64,000 nt of DNA from Mytilus trossulus (GCF_036588685.1 NC_086374.1:29326001-29390000); one strand, 5' to 3'; shown: positions 51,401 to 63,400, counted from the first letter of the stretch. Numbers and translations are program-made. Notes: generated from the letters alone by a model not told the origin.

Positions 51401-54400
51401 GGATTTATATAATATGAAATGCATATGTATTATAGTGATCCATTTTTTACTCTCCATTTTAAATTTAAGTCCACAAAATGAATGAATATTTTGTATTTGT
51501 AAAACAAATTATTACTGTTAAGTGTACAATGCAAGTATTAATTTTAATGAAATTTCAAGAAAATGAATTACATTAATATCAAATGTTTTTGATTTTAGTA
51601 AAAAAAAATCTACAATATCTCCTTTGAGCTTCAGGTTTATGTCTTAATAATTATGATTTCTTTTCATCTTTTCGTAGGAAAATGGATTATATTTGTGCAT
51701 ATGTGTCTATTTGAACTGTTTTAATATAATATAAAGGCATGAACTTTTTAATCAAGGAAACAATATTTTTTCTGCAGATACTCCTCCCGTTATAAGTGTC
51801 AGATTAGCTGGGGGTCCAACGAGCCAGGAAGGACGTGTGGAGATACAGTATAATGGTATCTGGGGTACAGTCTGTGATGATCATTTTGATAACTCAGCTG
51901 CTGCTGTTGTATGTCGAATGTTACATTTACCATTGTAAGTAGTCGAATGTTACATTTACCATTATAAGTAGTCAAATGTTACCTTTACCATTGGAATCAG
52001 TCTAATGTTACATTTATGTACGCAGTCAAATGTTACATTTACCATTGTAAGCAGTCAAATGTTACATTTACCATTGTAAGCAGTCAAATGTGACATTTAC
52101 CATTGTAAGCAGTCAAATGTTACATTTACCATTGTAAGCAGTCAAATGTTACATTTACCATTGTCAGTGGTCAAATGTTACATTTACCATTGAGGGGGGG
52201 CGAGAGGGGGTCTCATCCCGATTTCCCGGTTTTAATTTCAGAAAATCCCGAAATCCCGGACATATTTTGTTAAAAATCCCGATCTCGATAAATTTGTTTT
52301 CAAACTTTAAAATTTACAGTTTCAATGCTTACGATTTAAACGTCTCGGGTATGATTCAAAGTGACTAGTCTTTCATGTATCATCAGTATGACCGTGACGT
52401 AAATCTGCATATAAACATTTTTGTTCTCACAAATCTTCAGTAGCCAGTCAAAAAATTGGCCAAATTCCAGTTCAATTCAATACAAGAACCTATACGACTA
52501 GCACTGTAATCGTTTTGTAACGAAGAGAAATTTGAATCTATTGAGTCACCCTTCCAAAAACCAATGTACCAAGTTACAGACATAAACAGAACTACAAATG
52601 TCATTTGAGAGATTTGTAGTCGAAATACTGTTTTACATTATAAAATTTTAAAAAAATACTTGTTAGGATAAATGAGTATGCTCAGGGCTGTATTCAACTA
52701 CACAACTGATCACCAACAAGAAGCTGATCGACCGACCTTGGGATAATCAATAAAGATGAATAACAGGTCAATTTTTATAGTAGTGATTGGCAGGTATGAC
52801 TTAATGTGGAGGTTCTTGTGGGGACACAACTAAGAAAGGTAGAAAGTTACAATAAATTTTATGTAGAAACATGATCAAGCATGTTTTAAAAATTAAAAAT
52901 GAAGATCGTCTGTGACTTTAACAATTTTGTGAATTATTTGTTGGTCAATTAGAAATTTCAAAATGTACAGTGTTATAAATAATCGGCCAGTCTTGATGAA
53001 ATCCGTAAAGTCCTCCCAGATCGAGAAACTGTCCGATTGGTGATAGTCTCCAGATCTCGGGATGTGTGATAAAACGTATTCTGTGTTTGAAAGTCTACAC
53101 CACTTTGTTCATCATCTTTATCATTGTCATCGTCGCTTTCTGAGGAGTATTGATCTGAAATATTCGCATCACCGTCTTTGAAATTGATTTGAGTACACGA
53201 AGACGTTTTACTACGAGAAAACGTATTCTGTGTTTGCATGTCTATACCACTTTGTTCATCATCTTTATCATTGTCATCGTCGCTTTCTGAGGAGTATTGA
53301 TCTGAAATATTCGCATCATCGTCTTTGAAAGTAATTGAAGTGCCTGGAGTTGTTTTATTTGATTCATACATATTTAAGGGAAGCGTGCCACACTTGTATG
53401 CGGTGGTTTCAAGTCGAACAGTTCTTTGTCTAACACATTTTCCATGTGTGTTTGCCCATGTGTGTAAGAGACTTAGCTCAATTTTTGACGCAAATTGAGT
53501 TGTTGGTCGATCAAGTGACGGAATATTTTGAAGATGCATGATTGTGTCTGGAACAGGGTAATATGATGTTTCGTTTGTATAATAATGAGCTGCCCATTGT
53601 GTAATTCTTTTGACGCTTTCTCTAAAAATAATTCCGAAATCTCTACTGTACTGAAGTTTAGTTGGCAAACTCTGTTTGACGTGGCTCAATGCGTGCAAGT
53701 TCTCTACAACAGTGGTTAAACATGATGACATGTCTGCCAGGTATAAAGGATTACTGGATAATACCTGACAGAATCTAATGAGTTGATCTTCCATCATTAC
53801 CAACGAGTCCATGGTTTGTTTTGAGATGGTTCCCTCTGAACCATTTGTGTGTTTCTCAATATTTCCAATTCTCTTGACATTTGCTACGAGTTGTAAAAAG
53901 TATTGAACTGATTGCTGTACCATCTGTAGCGATTCATTGGGGTTGTAATGATGAACACTTGCCCCTTTCTCGTGTATAGAGAATGCTGCATATATTTTTT
54001 GCAAATGAAACAGGAAACGTTCGGTTTCACTAACTGTTGTGACTAATTTTATTTCGCCATATTTTGCGTCTGTAACATAAATATTTGTTCCGAATTCAAC
54101 TGCGATTCCCATGATTTGGCCAAATGAGGAGAGTTCAGCAGATCCAGTTGAACAACCATCTAATCCAGAGCCTGCTATTACGGACATAACACCATCACGA
54201 CTGAAACATTTCAGCTTTCTTTCTCCAATATCCCCAAATACCAGTCCATTTTTATAAATTGACACTGAACTTATTTCTGAGCAAATGTTGGATTGATTTT
54301 CAAAGATGTGAATTATACTCAAACTCTCTAAATTAATCGAGATAAGTCCTCCGCTCTCAGCTGATCTGCCTTTCCAGGAAATATAAAGTAAGCCATGACT

Positions 54401-57400
54401 GTAGCACATACATAAAACTGAGTGGACACCAACTGGATAGTCAAGCTTTTTGGTTGTTTGACAAACTAACCCAACTCCATCTTTGGATATTGCCATTTCA
54501 TACAATGACTTGAAGACATCACTGCTGCATAGCATCAAATCATCACCTGCAGTCGCTAGAACAGAGGGCCTTACTATATCACTGCCATTTAGGACATCTT
54601 TTGATGGTCTAGTTAGCTTGGTGTTGTTGATGTGTTGTTGTATACGCTCACGTATTGTATTGGCGGTACCATCCAAATTTAAGCCAAATTCCCTAGCCAG
54701 AGTTGTTAAACTAACTTTTGATCGATGCGATTTAAGTTGAATACCGATATCTTTACCAATTCCAAACACCAAGACATTCAGATCACGTTGACAGACGTAG
54801 CAAATACCAGATTCCAAAACGACACTCCTACAATCTTTGAGATCATTTTTGATAATCTTAACCTGCACTGGATTATGTAATCGAGCTTTGACGAGTTTTG
54901 TTGTTTTTGTCATTGGATCGTAGTTCAGGAAAACAAAATTACCAAGCCCGTCACAGTCGACAGCAATCGGATGCGGATACATACCGGGTTTATTGTCCTC
55001 CGTTGGGCGAAATCGATCAGGAATAAGGTTATGTACCACCATCCCAACTTCTTTCAATACATTTAGCAACTCATTGCTACTGAGTTTAATAACAGAAGCA
55101 ACATCCATGCGGTCCTTATTTCTCACGCAGTCGACAGTAAGAAGTTTGCGCATTTTTTTCTTTACATCAGGATTACAGTCATTGCGAAGAGTGTGTATAA
55201 TAGACAAATTCGCCCTCTCGTTTCCGAGTAGTAGGTACCAGTTTGCAAAACTGCACTTGACAGATTTGCCAACATGAACACAATCTGGTAAAACAGACAG
55301 TTCTGAAATACTTGGACTTGCTGTTCCCTCTTTAATTTCCTGTTGTATCGACTGGAGTGCAGCTTTATTTCCGGATTCACAATCAGTTGTTATAATGAAA
55401 ACAGAACATTTCGTGCATAACTTTCCACTTTCAACACACTTTGTGCAAGCCCTGAGTGAGGGCTGAATGCTTATTTGACCGTCTTTATGACACTGTTCAC
55501 ATACCGCACCATTTTGTATGCATCTCTGACAAACAGATATGCAACAACCAAACTCTTTGATTACACCGTCTTGTGTCTGTAGACCTTTGAGGCAGTTAAA
55601 GCAAATTTGACATTTCATAATACTATTCAAAAACAGTTCCTTCATGAAGATACCGGTCTTACCGGATTTTGACAGGTAATACACCGCAATTGGCATGCTT
55701 AATTTGTTACAAATAGATATCAAATAAAACACTACTGCTTCAGTAACTATTTTAGATTTGAGCTCATCTGGACTAGGATTTGGATTGTTTTTGACGTAAG
55801 CAATATCATAATCATCCACACAGCCGACAACTTTCTTCGTGCGTTCATCAACTTCAAAAGCAGCTTTAAGAGCCGTGCCATCAATAGCCATAGAGACAGG
55901 GTATACCTTAATAGTTTTATTTTCGATGAATGGCTGTATTCCGTCAGTTTTCTGGAGAAGTAATGAAAATGTAAGCAAAAGAGAACCGATGACACCGCTG
56001 CTTGTAGTGTACCCAGCCTTCGCAGACTGTCTTGCTGATCGGTGGGGTCCTCCTAAATTCATTCGATGTTTTGTGATGTCATTTGGAGTTCCAGATCCCT
56101 GGCCATGATACATAGGACCGCGTAAAAAATTTGCTGTTTTGCGACCACCCAGATATTCTATTGAATTATGAAATTCTAAAACGTCTATATCATATGGATG
56201 TCTTGGCTCAAAAAACCTATGTACTACATCATAGTTGTGCTTGTAGAATATAGAATTTCTTGAAATAGTTCCATTACTTATAAGTTCATTTAATTCAATA
56301 CAAAGTGGGTCTGCTTGTGTGATGTTTATTGGACAAAACTGTGTTTCGGAGTCATTGTCGGAGCTTTCACAGTCATCAGATAAATTAAGATCAGAATCTA
56401 GGCTTTCTAAATCGTGAACTTGTTCACAGTCAGATGCTTGTATTGTACTGTTTGTATTTTCATCATCAACAAATGTCAAAGCATTGGACACGTCTATGTC
56501 AGGGTCTCTACTTATATCATCTGTGATCAGGTTAATCCTGAAACAGGAAAAACATCACTTAACCTCAGTTTAAACAAGCTCTTATATGTATATGGTTCAT
56601 CAAAACTATAATACTTTAGTTTAAATTCCGTACAGATGACAGTGTTTGTAAGAATACTTTGTCAGTTATTTTTTATGTTTGTTAAATTGTGTAAGGATGC
56701 AGTATTGATCGACATTTATCAATGAGTTCTACACAGACCTGTGCTAGGGATCTTCGTGGACTGTCTATGAGGTATGAGAATATGCTCATTGTTGAAGGCC
56801 TCGTGGTGACTTCGAAATGAAGCGTTGTTCCATTGCTTTGTTTATCACGTGTTAATCAGAATTTCTTGTTATGTGTACATTTCACTCCTAAACCTTTCAT
56901 TTGTTAAAGACAAACCATTATGAAGTACTAAAGACGTGATAAAATAAATAAACGGGTGTTAATTATAATTTATTAATCATAGAATAATTCAACAAAATTA
57001 CAAAGTCATGTAATTGATAAAGTCATAAATGTGAATTTAGATTTTACCCGTCAGAAGGTGTAACAATCAAATCTGTATCGATATCGGAGTCATCGGACAT
57101 TGCATTTGCTGTTGTTTCATCTTGTTTGCTTGGCCGTGTCAACCATGAGGCAATGGCACTTTTCATTTGATTGTTTTCTTTCTCACAAATACTTTTACAG
57201 TTGCTTTTCCCGGTACAGGCATCAAAGTGTTCTGAAAATTAAATATGATAGTTTAGATATTTTCTTATGTTATATGAACACAGCTTGTATAATGATTGCT
57301 AATGTTCAGTAAAATGCTATACGAACGGTTTTACTTTTTATACATGCTATATGCATAGCTTTAAAATGTACTCAAATTTAAATTATCTTTTAGTTTTCCT

Positions 57401-60400
57401 CTACCACCTTTTGAGTGAGTAGAGACATCAAAGGGGAAGCTCAAACTCAAACTTTGAACATAAACAACTCTGATCTGAAAATAATTGATGTGCTTATATA
57501 TTCCAAGAGCAATACATGTTTCAGACCTATTAAATTGAATGTTTAAGATTAGCTCATGCGTTAACTGTCCGGGTATGGCTGAATTCAAAACCTATCGATG
57601 TTATATGTAATTGCTTTAAATACATACTGAAATTCTTTTTTTTTGGTTAATTTTGTATTCATAATGATTGCAAGTCTGTCACTGACTGAATGTTAACCTT
57701 TTTAGTACTTACTTCGTCTAAAATATGAAACTTTGGACGCAATACTCCTGTCAGCCTCTACTTTGTATTTCTTTTGGCAAATCCCACATTCAACTGTTAT
57801 TTCGTTTACTGCAACACTGTTTCCGCATTCTTTGATCACTAAGATAACACAGAAAAGAAACTTCAGATTCATCAACAAATCGATGCCACATGGTGTCATA
57901 AAGTTAAGATGTCCTGTGGAACATGGACAATAGTGTTGGTCAAGAATCTGACAGTTACTTTCTATGGTTTGGTGTGTTTGAGCTTTTTAAATTCATTTTT
58001 TCCCCTTTGATTATCATGGAGTATTTATTAAGAATTTCCGTTAAAGTCATTGTTATTTTACTTTTTTCAATCTATATAGATAATAAAGGTTAATAATGTG
58101 CACACGTTTCTGAAGGTAACAAAATATACTGCCCCGTTTTTGTAATTCTGCCATGTTGTTTGTTGATGTGTTACATATTTGCTTCTCGTTCATTTATTTG
58201 TACATAATTCATTAGGCCATTAGTTTTCTCGTTTGAAATGTTTTTCAGTGATGGATCCCGTTGACTGCCTAAGAAGGGGCCACTCTGTTCATGCTTCAGT
58301 GATTTCCTATACAAGCAGACAAATTTTTCCCCAGAAAAGGGGGGAGAGCCGAGGTCCCCTGCCCCTCCTAAATCCGCCTGTTTTACATTGGTCATATCGG
58401 GGTGTTTAATAGCTGACTATGCGGTATATGGACTTTGCTCATTATTGAAGGCCGTACAGTGACATATAGTTCTTAATTTCTGTGTCATTTGGTCTCTTGT
58501 GAAAAGTCAATTGGAAATATAACCATATCTTTTTTATAATCACAATACTGTACGATGTCCTTTTGCCCTCTTTCCTGAATCATTTTTAAGACAGTTGTCT
58601 GATTGTCAATTAAACCTAACTAAACCGTTGTATTTGTCGATTTACTCACATTGTCTAAAATCTTCTAACTCTGATGTTTGTTTATCCGTCCGTTCAGTGA
58701 TAGTTTCTCCCATTTTGATTTTTTTCAGCAAACTTTTGTTGTCTTGGACCTCAGTTTTTCGCTTTCGGCATCTTTGTTCAGAAGTAGTCGTTTCATCGTT
58801 ATTTACAATAATTTGGATGATTGGCGTTTTCTTCTTAAATACCACAATCTGTGGCGTAACACTCACTGAAAAAACAAGAATTCACCATTTATTTAATAAA
58901 AAGGTCCATGACTATTTAAGGTAACAAACAGACACATCTGACACAACTTTTAAAGGAGGCCGTCCTGGTTAAAACTTTACAAATTAAACCCTCTGAGTAA
59001 TGTTGTACTTCATAAGTTGCTTTCAACTTGTGCATGTTTGCTAATATATTTTATGATATTTTATAGTACGTACATTTTAAACACGTCAAGTTGGGGTATT
59101 TAATTTCTTCAAAATTGAAGAATGCCAGAAAGCAAAAACAGTTTTTTTTTCAAACGATTTTGACTGGTTCATATGAGAGAAAAAATCTGACTTTACAAGT
59201 GCTTCTCCACATAACAACTAAAACCCTTTTAAGGGTAGAGTTAGACTATAGGTAATAGTACTTAAAATTAAGGAAGATATATATATAGGGGTACCGGAAA
59301 CACATGAGTTTTCTTTTAGGTCTTACATGATTGAACTCTTATTGGAAATATCCAAATCAAGTCCAACTAAAAGGGTCGTAAAGAGGCGTTTTGTGCGCGG
59401 ACAAACGCGAAATAAAATTACCATTTCACGATGAACGAAACATTAGAAAAAAGCTTGAACGTTGCCGTTTTTATCAATTTCACAGTGAAGCACGAACTTT
59501 TTTAACGGAAGGTTGTAAATTAAAAATGGCAACACGTTTCACGAATAAAAACCTTTACCACCATGCCAAGAAATCAAAGCCAAAAATTCCGGTAGACCCC
59601 TACCGCAGCCGCACTCATTAGTAGTTAAAGATTTCATTTTATTCAACAAAGGAGTAGGTCCGGTAAGGACCGATTTTGGCCTCTAATTTCAGTTTCATTT
59701 GACAAAAGATTTTGAACACTTCTTAAACACTTAAGTGTCTTTTTCGTTTGATTCAATTATTTTTTGTGAAAGATTTAAACTCATTTAGTCATTAAAAACG
59801 ATCCGATTCAAGCTTAAAAATGAAAAATTTAACAAATATGCGAAAAAAAGCCACTTTTCAGATGGTTTTTGTCAAAAAAAGAAAGTGGCCGCATCCGTGT
59901 TCATCCTCAATCTTTACATATGTTATGCATTATCATCAAATACAACATCCATTTCAATATTTTGGATGAACACGAATGCGGCCACTTTCGTTTTACACGG
60001 AAACCGTCTAAAATTTTACTAAAAAGCTGGAATTATGAAGATTTCAGTAATTTAGTATGACTTAATTGTGCTAGTACTCAATATATGTGCATTGTGTTTA
60101 TATACATATTTATGTAGCAGATCCATTCTACTATCCAATAAATAACTAGAGTTTACATTTTAACAATTTTGTAAAACTGCTATATTTTGAGGCCAAAAAA
60201 GGTTCTTACCGGACCTACTCCTTTATTTATGACCTTTATTTACGTGTCACGGTTTTATACCAAATGGTCAATATTAATCATCAAAATAATTTACTCTATG
60301 GGATATTTGAAGAATTTCAACGGAGGCAATTATCTTGGCATGGGCTAAAGTTTTATATTTAGTTGGGAAAGTTTTTATTTTATTTCAGGTCCCGCGCGCA

Positions 60401-63400
60401 ACTCTCGCGCCAGATTGAGAAGAAACCACGTGACGCGGGTTTACAATAGCGACAACTTCGAAAATTTCTTTCTTTTTAGGTGGGAACGTTGAAGAGGCAA
60501 CACTGACGTATAACGACGGAATGCACACAATGTATTTATTTCTTTTGTCATTGTATGAAATTGACGTTTCGATCACAGTTCACGAGCAGTGCATGCTTTT
60601 GATTTAGTTGATCTGGTGTAACTTTAAAACACGTTTATCGATTATTTTCTTACAATGTATATTTTTCAGCAGCAGCTAGAGACATAGATTTGTATTTTGA
60701 TTTAGGAACAGACATTTTAATGTAGGATTTTACTGAGATTTACGGACTTTGCAAGCAATTTTTACGACATTGAAATTTCTTTTCTCTGCCAAAATTCTTG
60801 GGAGTAAGCTGCACACCGTTGTGATAATAAGACGCAATACATGTATACCCTGGTGACTGTAAAGTTTTGGGTCGATTGGTCATGTGTTTTTCAGTTGGCA
60901 CTGGACACAAGAATGTTGTCAATATTTTTCGAGAAAACAACATTAAGGATAACAATAGAGTTGTCATTCTTCTACGTGGACAGGATAGCAAGCGCAAGAT
61001 TCAAGAGTTGTAAGTAAAGGGTAACTTCGCGAAAAGAAGGGAGGGGGGCATTTTTTTCTCTCTCATGAAAATGGTACATACGAATGGCTAAACACGCCTT
61101 TTAACAATATAAACCAATTGCTTTAAACTTTCTTTCTGTAAAGGGTCCATATTATTGTGTTACCCGGGCTAAAGTTTTATTTTTAGTTGGGAAAGTTTTT
61201 ATTTTATTTCAGGTCCCGCGCGCAACTCTTGCGCCAGATTGAGAAGACACCACGTGACGCGAGTAGCGACAACTTCGAATATTTCTTTCTTTTTAGGTGG
61301 GGACGTTGAAGAGACAACACGTATAACGACGGAATACACACAATGTATTTATTTCTTTTGTCATTGTAGATCCTTGTAGGAAATTGACGTTTCGATCACA
61401 GTTCACAAACAGTGCATGCTTTTGATTTAATTGATCCGGTGTCACTTTATAACACGTTTATCGATTATTTTTATTATTTGTATTTTGTTTAAGAACAAAC
61501 ATTTTATTGTAGGATTTTACTGAAATTTACGGACTTAGCAAGCGATTTTTACGGCATTGAAATTTCCTTTCTCTACCAAATTTCTTGGGAGTTAGCAGCA
61601 CACCGTTGTGATAATAAGACGCAATACATGTATACCCTGGTGACTGTAAAGTTTTGGGTTGATTGGACATGTATTTTTCAGTTGGCACTGGACAATAAAA
61701 AAAAATGTTGATCGTTGTTTCTTCCGTATGAAATCAGATCCTTGTCCGGAAACACATTTGACCGAAGTAACACTTTTTATTTCGCCTGATAAGAAACTGG
61801 ATGCACACGTTTAGGAAAAAAGGGGGTGGGTTAAGGTTTTGTATATACAACTTTATAAAAAGTCAAACGATATTTTCAAGTTGATCGCATGAATACTTAT
61901 TTGTAAGAAATAGGATCAAATATGTTTGCTCTTTGTTTTATATGTACTATAACAGAAAGAGTTTTATATGTACTATAACAGAAAGAGTTTTATATGTACT
62001 ATAACAGAGAGAGTTTTATATGTACTATAACGGAAAGAGTTTTATATGTACTATAACAGAAAGGGTTTTATATGTACTATAACAGAAATAGTTTTATATG
62101 TACTATAACAGAAAGAGTTTTATATGTACTATAACGGAAAGAGTTTTATATGTACTATAACAGAAAAAGATAAGTTACTACATGATTGTACCTATCAAAG
62201 TTGATCTCTCAGATTGAAGGAACGTATTTTCGTGGTCCCATTGTTGTTGTGTATTGATGGAAAAGTTTTCCACTTTTCCTTTGTCATCCTTGTATTGCCT
62301 TCCTAACTTTGTATAAACATTTCTCCCCATCCCTTTTTCACAAGCCGATTCATTGATTCCACAATAATTGACTACATATTTTTTAAATTTGTTTAACTCC
62401 GTGAAGCTTTCGCTGTCCAGCACAATGTTTGTTTTTTCTTTAAGAAAAGGCAAAGAATTTTCATCTTTGTGAAATAACAAAAGGGTTCTAATTGAAATAG
62501 TTTTAGAATCTTCTGTCATGATGACTTTCAAAAAACCATCGTCTGCTACCGGAAGTTTATATATGTAATTAAATCAAAATCGCTTAACGGTATAATTGTG
62601 GAGCTGATCCGAGCTTAGTCAACTTACTGTTACACGATCTTACATGTACTCTGATCTGGATCTACTCTGTTTCTGGATGCAATTCTGATTGACTTATAAT
62701 GAAAATGGCACTTTTATCTGTCTGATGTACAGTTTTATGTCAATCCCGTTATAATTCAACATAAAAATCCCGATTTCCCGTGGCTAAAAATGTGATATTC
62801 CCGTATCTCGATGTTTTTCTATCCCGAATTCCCGATCTTTAAACAAGGCAATCCCGAATTCCCGTTGCTAAAATCGGCCGATCCCGGCGTCCCGAAAATG
62901 GTCTCGCCCCCCCTCACCATTGTAAGCAGTCAAATGTTACATTTACCATTGTCAGTAGTCAAATGTTACATTTACATTTACATGTTACATTTACATTTAC
63001 ATTTACATGTTACATTTACATTTACATTTACATTTACATGTTACATATTTACATTTTACATTTACATGTTACATTTACCATTGTAAGCAGTAAAATGTTA
63101 CATTTACCATTGTAAGCAGTCAAATGTTACATTTACCATTGTCAGTAGTCAAATGTAACATTTACCATTGTCAGTAGTCAAATGTTACATTTACCATTGT
63201 CAGTAGTCAAATGTTACATTTACCATTGTCAGTAGTCAAATGTTTCATTTTCCATTGTAAGCAGTCAAATGTTACATTTACCATTGTCAGTAGTCAAATG
63301 TTTTAATTTAGAACAAAATTGATGACTAATTTATGTTTCACGGAGAACAGAACACTATAAAATATTTAAATGGCTTTGAATAACATTACATAATTAATTA

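Follow-up and report, generated by a model that had tools for sequence, protein, structure and literature searches.

The sequence described here is a 64-kb window of AT-rich DNA from the mussel Mytilus trossulus (G000:C2:29326001-29390000); positions given without a chromosome are counted from its first letter. At 52192-62915 it carries a 10.7-kb element with perfect 14-bp terminal inverted repeats (TIRs) and a five-exon transposase gene on the minus strand. The element is very probably an autonomous class II cut-and-paste transposon of the DDE (Asp-Asp-Glu) type, mobile in the very recent past, and one that belongs to a lineage of its own, related to P-element/THAP9 transposases.

The ends of the element were located by an inverted-repeat search and by reading of the sequence. 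The left TIR, GAGGGGGGGCGAGA, occupies 52192-52205 and the right TIR, TCTCGCCCCCCCTC, occupies 62902-62915 (both given on the plus strand), as a preliminary description of the window had read them, and the genomic copies described below bear these limits out. The inverted-repeat search reported arms of 15 nt (52191-52205 and 62902-62916), because the last T and the first A of the target-site duplication pair by chance. The duplication, ACCATT, flanks the element on both sides (52186-52191 and 62916-62921); sequence and copy comparison give its length as 6 bp, not 4 or 7, so that of the two lengths considered in the preliminary description, 6 and 4 bp, only the first is retained. The left ACCATT belongs to the unit of a 29-bp satellite, GTCAAATGTTACATTTACCATTGTAAGCA, whose array is split by the element into two parts, 51913-52192 and 62916-63302, with about 24 copies in all; past 62966 the satellite decays to short repeats of the TTACAT type. 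Since excising the element together with one ACCATT restores the satellite unit, the array constitutes a built-in empty site.

Inside the TIRs, the word TCCCG occurs five times in the first 90 bp and ten times in the last 171 bp of the element, with only four occurrences across the 10 kb between. The left and right subterminal regions (52206-52290 and 62740-62901) contain 15 of the 27 TCCCG words of the whole window, all on the plus strand, and many are paired 8 bp apart, often as (A/T)TCCCG at the left end. As they lie on the same strand at both ends, these repeats are direct rather than inverted relative to the element; they are probable binding sites of the transposase.

A search of the assembly with 300 bp of each end returned 14 copies in which both ends are paired. 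A second full-length copy lies on another chromosome (G000:C1:105024003-105034758), flanked by the duplication AATATA. Over 10.7 kb the two full-length copies are 99.6% identical, with 9 substitutions and 3 indels between them, and both keep the long reading frame open; at least 12 shorter derivatives, of 0.7-6 kb, have identical ends. Perfect 6-bp duplications flank 11 of the 14 paired copies (ACCATT, AATATA, AACATT, ATATCT, ACATAT, ATTAAT twice, ATTATA, ACACAA, TTCTTA and AAGAGT), while one copy has a single mismatch, one is ambiguous (C-run) and one has no duplication. The insertion sites are varied AT-rich sequences, one of them within the satellite. Most duplications begin with A and end with T, a weak palindromic bias in a small sample; such an A-N4-T bias fits a symmetric dimer. 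That two full-length copies, nearly identical and both with an open frame, occupy unrelated sites and are each flanked by a different duplication indicates that the element has transposed, and recently, so that its earlier description as an intact, recently active DNA transposon stands.

An alternative is that the gene is a host gene domesticated from a transposase, with the inverted ends as relics. A long, intact reading frame that is spliced and transcribed would suit such a history, as would the intact divergent paralogues at C3:66.62 Mb and C6:17.63 Mb. Nevertheless, we consider domestication very improbable: the near-identity of the two copies includes the non-coding sequence, many deletion derivatives share the same ends, one insertion lies inside a satellite array, and the C3 paralogue also has a multi-copy end starting with GAGG. 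In runs X1-X20, which carry five coded organism labels, 30-69% of the sampled 31-mers of 52973-58900 are present, and near-identical copies are therefore held by several labelled species or populations; this could reflect shared ancestry in the Mytilus complex, introgression or horizontal transfer.

The gene is dominated by a long minus-strand open reading frame (ORF; 52973-56491, 1172 aa), whose product was found in a protein search to be 100% identical to the NCBI entry 'uncharacterized protein LOC134695518' of M. trossulus. The NCBI model, of 1312 aa, derives from the C1 copy and maps onto four coding exons. Logan contigs of two runs, X1 and X3, the RNA nature of which is only guessed, were aligned to 56350-62340. 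The joints 56536^57047, 57231^57713 and 57838^58650 are present in contigs of both runs, and 58865^62192, with 149 nt on its short side, in X1 only. All four read CT..AC on the plus strand, which is GT..AG on the coding strand, and as four canonical introns are gone from one contig, the X1 contig is likely to be mRNA. The X3 contig reads unspliced through 58650-59329, which accounts for the shorter start of the NCBI model.

The resulting exons, all on the minus strand, are exon 1 at 62192-62560 (first ATG at 62519; the upper limit is approximate and follows the length of the X1 contig), exon 2 at 58650-58865 (with the NCBI start at an internal ATG, 58713), exon 3 at 57713-57838, exon 4 at 57047-57231 and exon 5 at 52973-56536. 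Exon 5 contributes about 1187 codons and the stop (52973-52975), is open from 56491 up to the acceptor at 56536, and contains the entire catalytic region. The frame is open across the five exons for about 1472 aa, by exon-length arithmetic rather than by joined translation, in agreement with the exon structure first spliced by hand. The exon-1 peptide matches residues 44-120 of a homologue from the coral Oculina (E 2e-7) and, judged from this sequence match, the fifth, upstream exon is genuine coding sequence.

Several repeats are nested in the gene. A 147-bp tandem duplication in the 3' part of the coding sequence (53071-53341) repeats an acidic, Ser/Asp-rich C-terminal peptide, and the X1 transcript contig seems to break there. 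Intron 1 holds an insertion resembling a miniature inverted-repeat transposable element (59645-60227), with 42-nt inverted arms that are 88% complementary and 499 nt apart. This segment and 58350-58549 reach word depths of hundreds to thousands in transcript-type contigs and also attract raw RNA-seq reads, which identifies them as high-copy repeats unrelated to the transposase; both are also present in the C1 copy. A 26-bp tandem array of 8.9 copies with 95% matches (61935-62166) starts 26 nt into intron 1 from the exon-1 donor, and two 300-bp direct repeats, 89% identical, lie at about 60342-60648 and 61166-61471.

The catalytic core is described with residue numbers of the exon-5 ORF; searches and models were made by single exons, and the models cover the exon-5 protein. 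Pfam, the model and the family alignment place the N-terminal part of a split RNase H fold at residues 194-417 (55241-55912, minus strand), with D204, D370 and D403-x-x-H406, while the model and the alignment place the C-terminal helices of the fold at residues 921-961 (53609-53731, minus strand), with E930 in the motif VENLH. The order D, D, DxxH, E had been read from the sequence in the preliminary description, and the family alignment shows that it is kept: among the sequences covering each position, D204 is present in 22 of 22, D370 in 26 of 26, D403 and H406 in 25 of 25, and E930 in 24 of 25. The Pfam family PF21787 (TNP-like RNase H, N-terminal part) matches with E 7e-6 and 26.8 bits, compared with a curated cut-off of 24.6. 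PF21789, the C-terminal part, gives no Pfam match in the window protein.

When the exon-5 protein was modelled with AlphaFold together with 27 relatives, the predicted local distance difference test score (pLDDT) exceeded 90 for residues 160-930. Because fold searches with the whole model filled with propellers (see below), residues 150-500 were folded alone, with 60 relatives, giving a pLDDT of 94. In a Foldseek search of the PDB with this model, the Drosophila P transposase comes first (6pe2_A, E 4.5e-7; 6p5a_A, 9e-7; template modelling (TM) score about 0.49), followed at a wide distance by RAG1 (E 1e-2), Hermes (7e-2, range 0.07-0.3), ISCth4 and Transib. This is the outcome expected of the P-like core proposed earlier, for which a comparison with P, Hermes and RAG1 had been suggested. 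VIA, an aligner independent of Foldseek, also puts P first, with Z 11.5 for 6p5a_A (226 residues aligned, root-mean-square deviation (rmsd) 3.6 A, chain 192-429), then retroviral integrase cores (Z about 6), RAG1 (4.5) and Transib (4.3); Hermes is not among the best rows. The alignment with P does not stop at the RNase H sheet but also takes in the first helices of the insertion domain, up to P residue 429. Judged from range offsets rather than from a residue alignment, the first catalytic Asp of the integrases would fall on D204.

For sequence-level comparison, alignments were made of canonical mussel P-like genes, which have PF21787, PF21788 and PF21789 (e.g. L068:1024-3321:-), and of KolobokP-type transposases, which stand beside a His-Me nuclease gene in tandem arrays and whose relatives carry PF20700. 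Profile-profile alignment (hhalign) with the P-like set gives E 0.058 over 154 columns, with a probability below 1%. It is collinear: D204, D370 and the DxxH motif fall on the invariant D345, D447 and D487-H490 of the P-like proteins, and a Cys-rich stretch is skipped as an insertion. The stretch that follows the propeller, as far as VENLH, aligns with the P-like stretch ending in the invariant E699 (E 0.0044, probability 8%). With the KolobokP-type alignment the value is E 0.83, spanning the second Asp and DxxH only. Single sequences or small alignments gave only weak hhalign values, and a search of the single protein against the sequences of solved structures returned nothing useful. On all these comparisons, the family appears closer to P than to any other group compared, yet far outside canonical P.

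The structural ranking could also arise if the family had branched off on its own within the C/DxxH group (hAT, P, Kolobok, MuDR, Dada, Transib/RAG), with P the best fold match only for want of a closer solved structure. The sequence-level links to P are indeed borderline, Kolobok, Dada and most MuDR transposases are without a solved structure to compete, and Dada also makes 6-7-bp duplications (PMC3706591). However, structures exist for hAT (Hermes), Transib, RAG1 and ISCth4 (IS256 type), and P scores far better than any of them; the alignment continues into the P insertion domain; PF21787 is above its curated cut-off; and the language-model neighbours of the protein belong to PF21787 families throughout, although these are a lead only. 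Dada itself inserts into small-RNA genes, its D-to-E spacing is short, and inverted ends are absent from it (PMC3706591). We therefore regard an independent branch as unlikely, and retain a relationship to P as the better account of the core.

Three modules are inserted in or added to this core. Between helix alpha1 and strand beta4 of the RNase H fold, and so between the first and second catalytic Asp, residues 295-362 (55406-55609, minus strand) form a ten-cysteine module, in which C297, C300, C317, C321, C324, C331, C334, C349, C352 and C359 are essentially invariant in the family alignment. This is the Cys-rich insert that had been noticed in the window sequence, and it is probably a zinc module.

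The second module is a six-bladed beta-propeller of the NHL type, residues 481-820 (54032-55051, minus strand), which sits inside the insertion domain, after DxxH and before the catalytic Glu. The AlphaFold model has about 24 strands in residues 484-819. VIA aligns it with 3hrp (Z 25.9), SOQ1 (24.8) and NHLRC2 (24.7) at an rmsd of 2.7-3.0 A over about 260 residues (258-268), and Foldseek gives a target TM score of about 0.8 to the designed six-bladed Pizza proteins. The family profile matches NHL domains with E 2.7e-21, and Pfam NHL is found in 7 of 27 relatives; a profile search of a representative library was swamped by NHL proteins (46,702 matches). Between blades 2 and 3, residues 588-631 (54599-54730, minus strand) are modelled as a SAP-like helix-extended-helix, with predicted helices at 592-601 and 610-627. 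Pfam SAP (PF02037) is found in 8 of 27 relatives, with a best E of 3.4e-7, and at 1e-11 in P0073, while the window protein itself has at this site only a weak match to SAP_new25 (E 0.057). The proposed NHL-like propeller is thus carried by profile search, Pfam and structure together; the embedded SAP motif draws on the same three lines and is, in the mussel protein itself, a suggestive match. At the same position P has its helical GTP-binding domain, PF21788, which is present in the canonical mussel P-like ORFs and absent from the window protein and all 27 relatives. The insertion domains known from DDE enzymes, those of hAT, RAG1 and P (the last of which binds GTP), are helical, and such domains shape how DNA is held and cut. 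A complete propeller with a SAP motif at this position would, if the assignment is right, be a new structural solution. The propeller resembles those of NHLRC2, SOQ1, TRIM71/Brat and teneurin in its six-bladed fold (Z 24-26), and at least one pair of blades is NHL-like in sequence (profile E 3e-21). No NHL propeller inside a transposase, or with a SAP insertion between its blades, was found in the literature.

The third module lies upstream of the core. A C2HC finger, C-x2-C-x22-H-x3-C, is split by intron 3 (57215-57788, minus strand), is conserved in the Priapulus and Oculina proteins, and is presumed to be the DNA-binding domain. The preliminary description had called it BED-like, an assignment that no search supports: the finger fits no Pfam family, and in particular matches neither BED nor THAP. 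THAP (PF05485) is absent from the exon peptides and from the full-length relatives at E values up to 1.

As discussed above, the element is most similar to the P/THAP9 group, represented here by Drosophila P, zebrafish Pdre and the mussel gene L068:1024-3321:-. The two have in common a split RNase H fold, predicted in the mussel protein, in which D, D, DxxH and E follow one another in order, similar motifs around the second Asp (T-D-x-x-x-N-K/R) and around DxxH (D-x-x-H-x-x-K-x-x-x-x-x-F-x-N), and a large insertion domain between DxxH and E. Short inverted ends accompanied by subterminal repeats of binding-site type, derivatives with internal deletions and a gene with introns are likewise found in both. 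P elements have a THAP domain, a GTP-binding insertion domain that has been called the only one of its kind, ends of 31 or 13 bp, and 8-bp duplications (PMC7776569). In contrast, the mussel element has a C2HC finger without THAP, a SAP-bearing propeller instead of a detectable PF21788, a ten-cysteine module between the first two catalytic Asp, a 6-bp duplication, GAGG...CCTC ends with subterminal repeats on the same strand, and a protein of about 1470 aa rather than 750-900 aa. The departures from P that had been listed at the outset in duplication length, in the ends and in the lack of THAP are thereby upheld.

The combination of a C/DxxH-group DDE enzyme with a six-bladed propeller and with zinc-binding elements within the catalytic region is also seen in RAG1-RAG2 and the Transib-derived RAG-like elements. 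The mussel propeller, however, is of the NHL type, on the same polypeptide and nested in the insertion domain, while RAG2 is a separate protein with a Kelch-type propeller. The core has Z 11.5 to P compared with 4.3-4.5 to RAG1 and Transib, and RAG-like elements make 5-bp duplications. Transib/RAG1 was rejected on these grounds, and the parallel with RAG1-RAG2 is drawn as an analogy only; homology is not claimed. hAT was rejected as well, with Hermes at a Foldseek E of only 0.07-0.3, no BED or hAT match in Pfam, and a duplication of 6 bp compared with 8 bp.

Kolobok, including the bivalve KolobokP, shares with the element the C/DxxH group, purine-purine...pyrimidine-pyrimidine ends and abundance in molluscs, and a zinc finger follows the first Asp in some Kolobok lineages (PMC9587614). 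Its transposase is of the PF20700 type, for which there is no match in the protein or in 27 relatives; the profile match is weaker than that to P, its duplications are TTAA or 3-5 bp (PMC9587614) rather than varied 6-bp sequences, and neither a propeller nor a SAP motif is reported in Kolobok. Dada was compared by its published description only. Like the mussel element, it has a DxxH motif and long genes with introns inside a large element, occurs in molluscs, and makes duplications of a comparable length (6-7 bp). It differs in lacking inverted ends, in targeting snRNA/tRNA genes, in its short spacing (D-to-D about 68 aa, D-to-E about 176 aa) and in having CCCC and CCHC fingers elsewhere (PMC3706591), while the inverted ends of the mussel element are perfect over 14 bp and its targets, one of them a satellite, are unrelated AT-rich sequences. 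Both Kolobok and Dada were rejected.

Relatives that are 29-44% identical over the whole 850-aa core were found in M. galloprovincialis, Priapulus caudatus and the corals Oculina, Desmophyllum, Montipora, Porites and Acropora. Those in corals, Priapulus and mussels keep the full architecture, and more occur in many other assemblies. The family is abundant, with clusters of up to 379 near-identical members in the protein collection searched, and all named homologues are labelled 'uncharacterized' or 'hypothetical'. One relative in the representative library, P0162, has a weak C-terminal PHD-like finger (residues 1178-1219; E 1.4e-4, 22.2 bits compared with a cut-off of 24), which is of note as RAG2 consists of a propeller and a PHD.

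The mussel genome itself holds two more intact lineages, at C3:66.62 Mb (37% identity) and C6:17.63 Mb (35%), a third on C7, and decayed copies. The ends of other mussel lineages were read on the 3' side of the gene: the DNA on that side terminates in GAGGGGCCTGATGGGGGGGTC... for the C3 gene and in GAGGGGGGGGCAAGGGGGGGTC... for the C7 gene, each followed by its own subterminal repeat. The C3-lineage end is found in at least 40 places, many of them beginning exactly at that G. A metagenome family of 7.9 kb, related at 29% identity, is bounded by inverted ends of 16 bp, GAGGCCCTGTTAGGGG, and carries a subterminal motif, GCGACA, on the same strand at both ends. In these three other lineages, too, GAGG stands at the end, with G-rich sequence and a lineage-specific subterminal repeat behind it, and the GAGG ends therefore mark the group; the 6-bp duplication is established for the window's own family only.

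The abundance of the family raises the possibility that it belongs to an already named superfamily or family, such as 'P', 'Kolobok' or an unclassified bivalve or coral DNA family of Repbase/Dfam, and that only the protein annotation lags. Repbase lists 20 DDE superfamilies (PMC9587614), bivalve and coral genomes have been heavily mined, the large clusters include named members in corals, and both the purine-purine...pyrimidine-pyrimidine ends and the position of the zinc module recall Kolobok (PMC9587614). On the other hand, a full-text literature search turned up no paper in which a transposase is combined with NHL, a propeller or SAP in this manner, no named homologue has a more specific label than those given above, the KolobokP-type transposases of the same genome align worse than the P-like ones (E 0.83 compared with 0.058), and neither the TTAA or 3-5-bp duplications of Kolobok (PMC9587614) nor the 8-bp duplications, THAP and GTP-binding domain of P (PMC7776569) agree with the element. 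A prior name is thus possible, and we regard it as doubtful rather than improbable. The earlier statement that the element fits no superfamily holds against P, KolobokP, hAT, Transib/RAG and, by published features, Dada, with Repbase and Dfam outside the comparison; the P-related lineage set apart in this way is probably unnamed.

A number of observations weigh against the P-related transposon proposed here. Sequence similarity to canonical P transposases is marginal, so that the link to P rests mainly on predicted structure: the hhalign match with the P-like set is of low probability, PF21787 is found by Pfam scan in only 3 of 27 relatives, the family hidden Markov model matched no mussel P-like ORF and no KolobokP-type ORF significantly, and among the PDB sequences the family profile retrieved nothing but NHL chains and weakly matching SAP chains, with P transposase not among them. 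The flanks of the metagenome relatives show no target duplication, most likely as these are chimeric assemblies of a repeat, and one of the 14 paired mussel copies is likewise without one. An RNA-seq check of the exon junctions had been suggested, and its outcome is divided: the four joints are present in assembled contigs, from runs that are RNA by guess only, but the exons have zero read depth in the raw reads of two RNA-seq runs filed under the same species label, where expression is accordingly low or absent. The roles of the propeller, SAP motif, Cys module and finger are inferred only.

Taking these points into account, we give an even chance to the fuller proposal that the family is an undescribed, superfamily-level DDE lineage, sister to P/THAP9 and present in cnidarians, molluscs and priapulids, with GAGG ends, same-strand subterminal repeats and 6-bp duplications, in which a SAP-bearing NHL propeller has replaced the GTP-binding domain to give a single-chain counterpart of RAG1-RAG2. 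The mussel copy would then be a naturally occurring member, probably still active. In the mechanism envisaged for the element as a P-related transposon, whatever the rank of its lineage, the N-terminal region with the C2HC finger would tether the protein to the subterminal TCCCG repeats, and two or more protomers would pair the GAGG ends. D204, D370 and E930 would coordinate the metal ions used both to cleave the ends and to transfer strands into a target cut with a 6-bp stagger. Contact with DNA, which in P falls to the insertion domain, would pass to the SAP-propeller module. This module may bind target or flanking DNA, or it may serve as a docking site for a chromatin or host factor, in the way that the RAG2 propeller serves RAG1.

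If this proposal is correct, a DDE nuclease and a six-bladed propeller have been paired independently, which bears on why RAG1 needs RAG2. As both full-length copies are intact and only 9 substitutions apart in 10.7 kb, the natural sequence can be used directly in excision and integration assays. In addition, dozens of 'uncharacterized proteins' of corals, mussels and priapulids can now be labelled transposases, and a family whose ends and 6-bp duplication are defined can be added to bivalve and coral repeat libraries.

Two further loci or groups of loci in the mussel assembly were observed in the course of these comparisons. Stop-ridden, decayed copies of a related transposase, with 41-57% identity, are spread over about 0.9 Mb at G000:C13:24.91-25.80 Mb, and this cluster is probably an old insertion that was segmentally duplicated. 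Long tandem arrays with a period of 3.6-4.1 kb lie at G000:C8:72.90-73.12 Mb, C1:96.35-96.42 Mb, C4:92.10-92.13 Mb and elsewhere (L073-L082). Their units contain a His-Me finger nuclease gene (PF05551) beside a 461-aa ORF for a PF20700-type transposase, and the arrays fit the KolobokP multimers of bivalves (PMC9587614).

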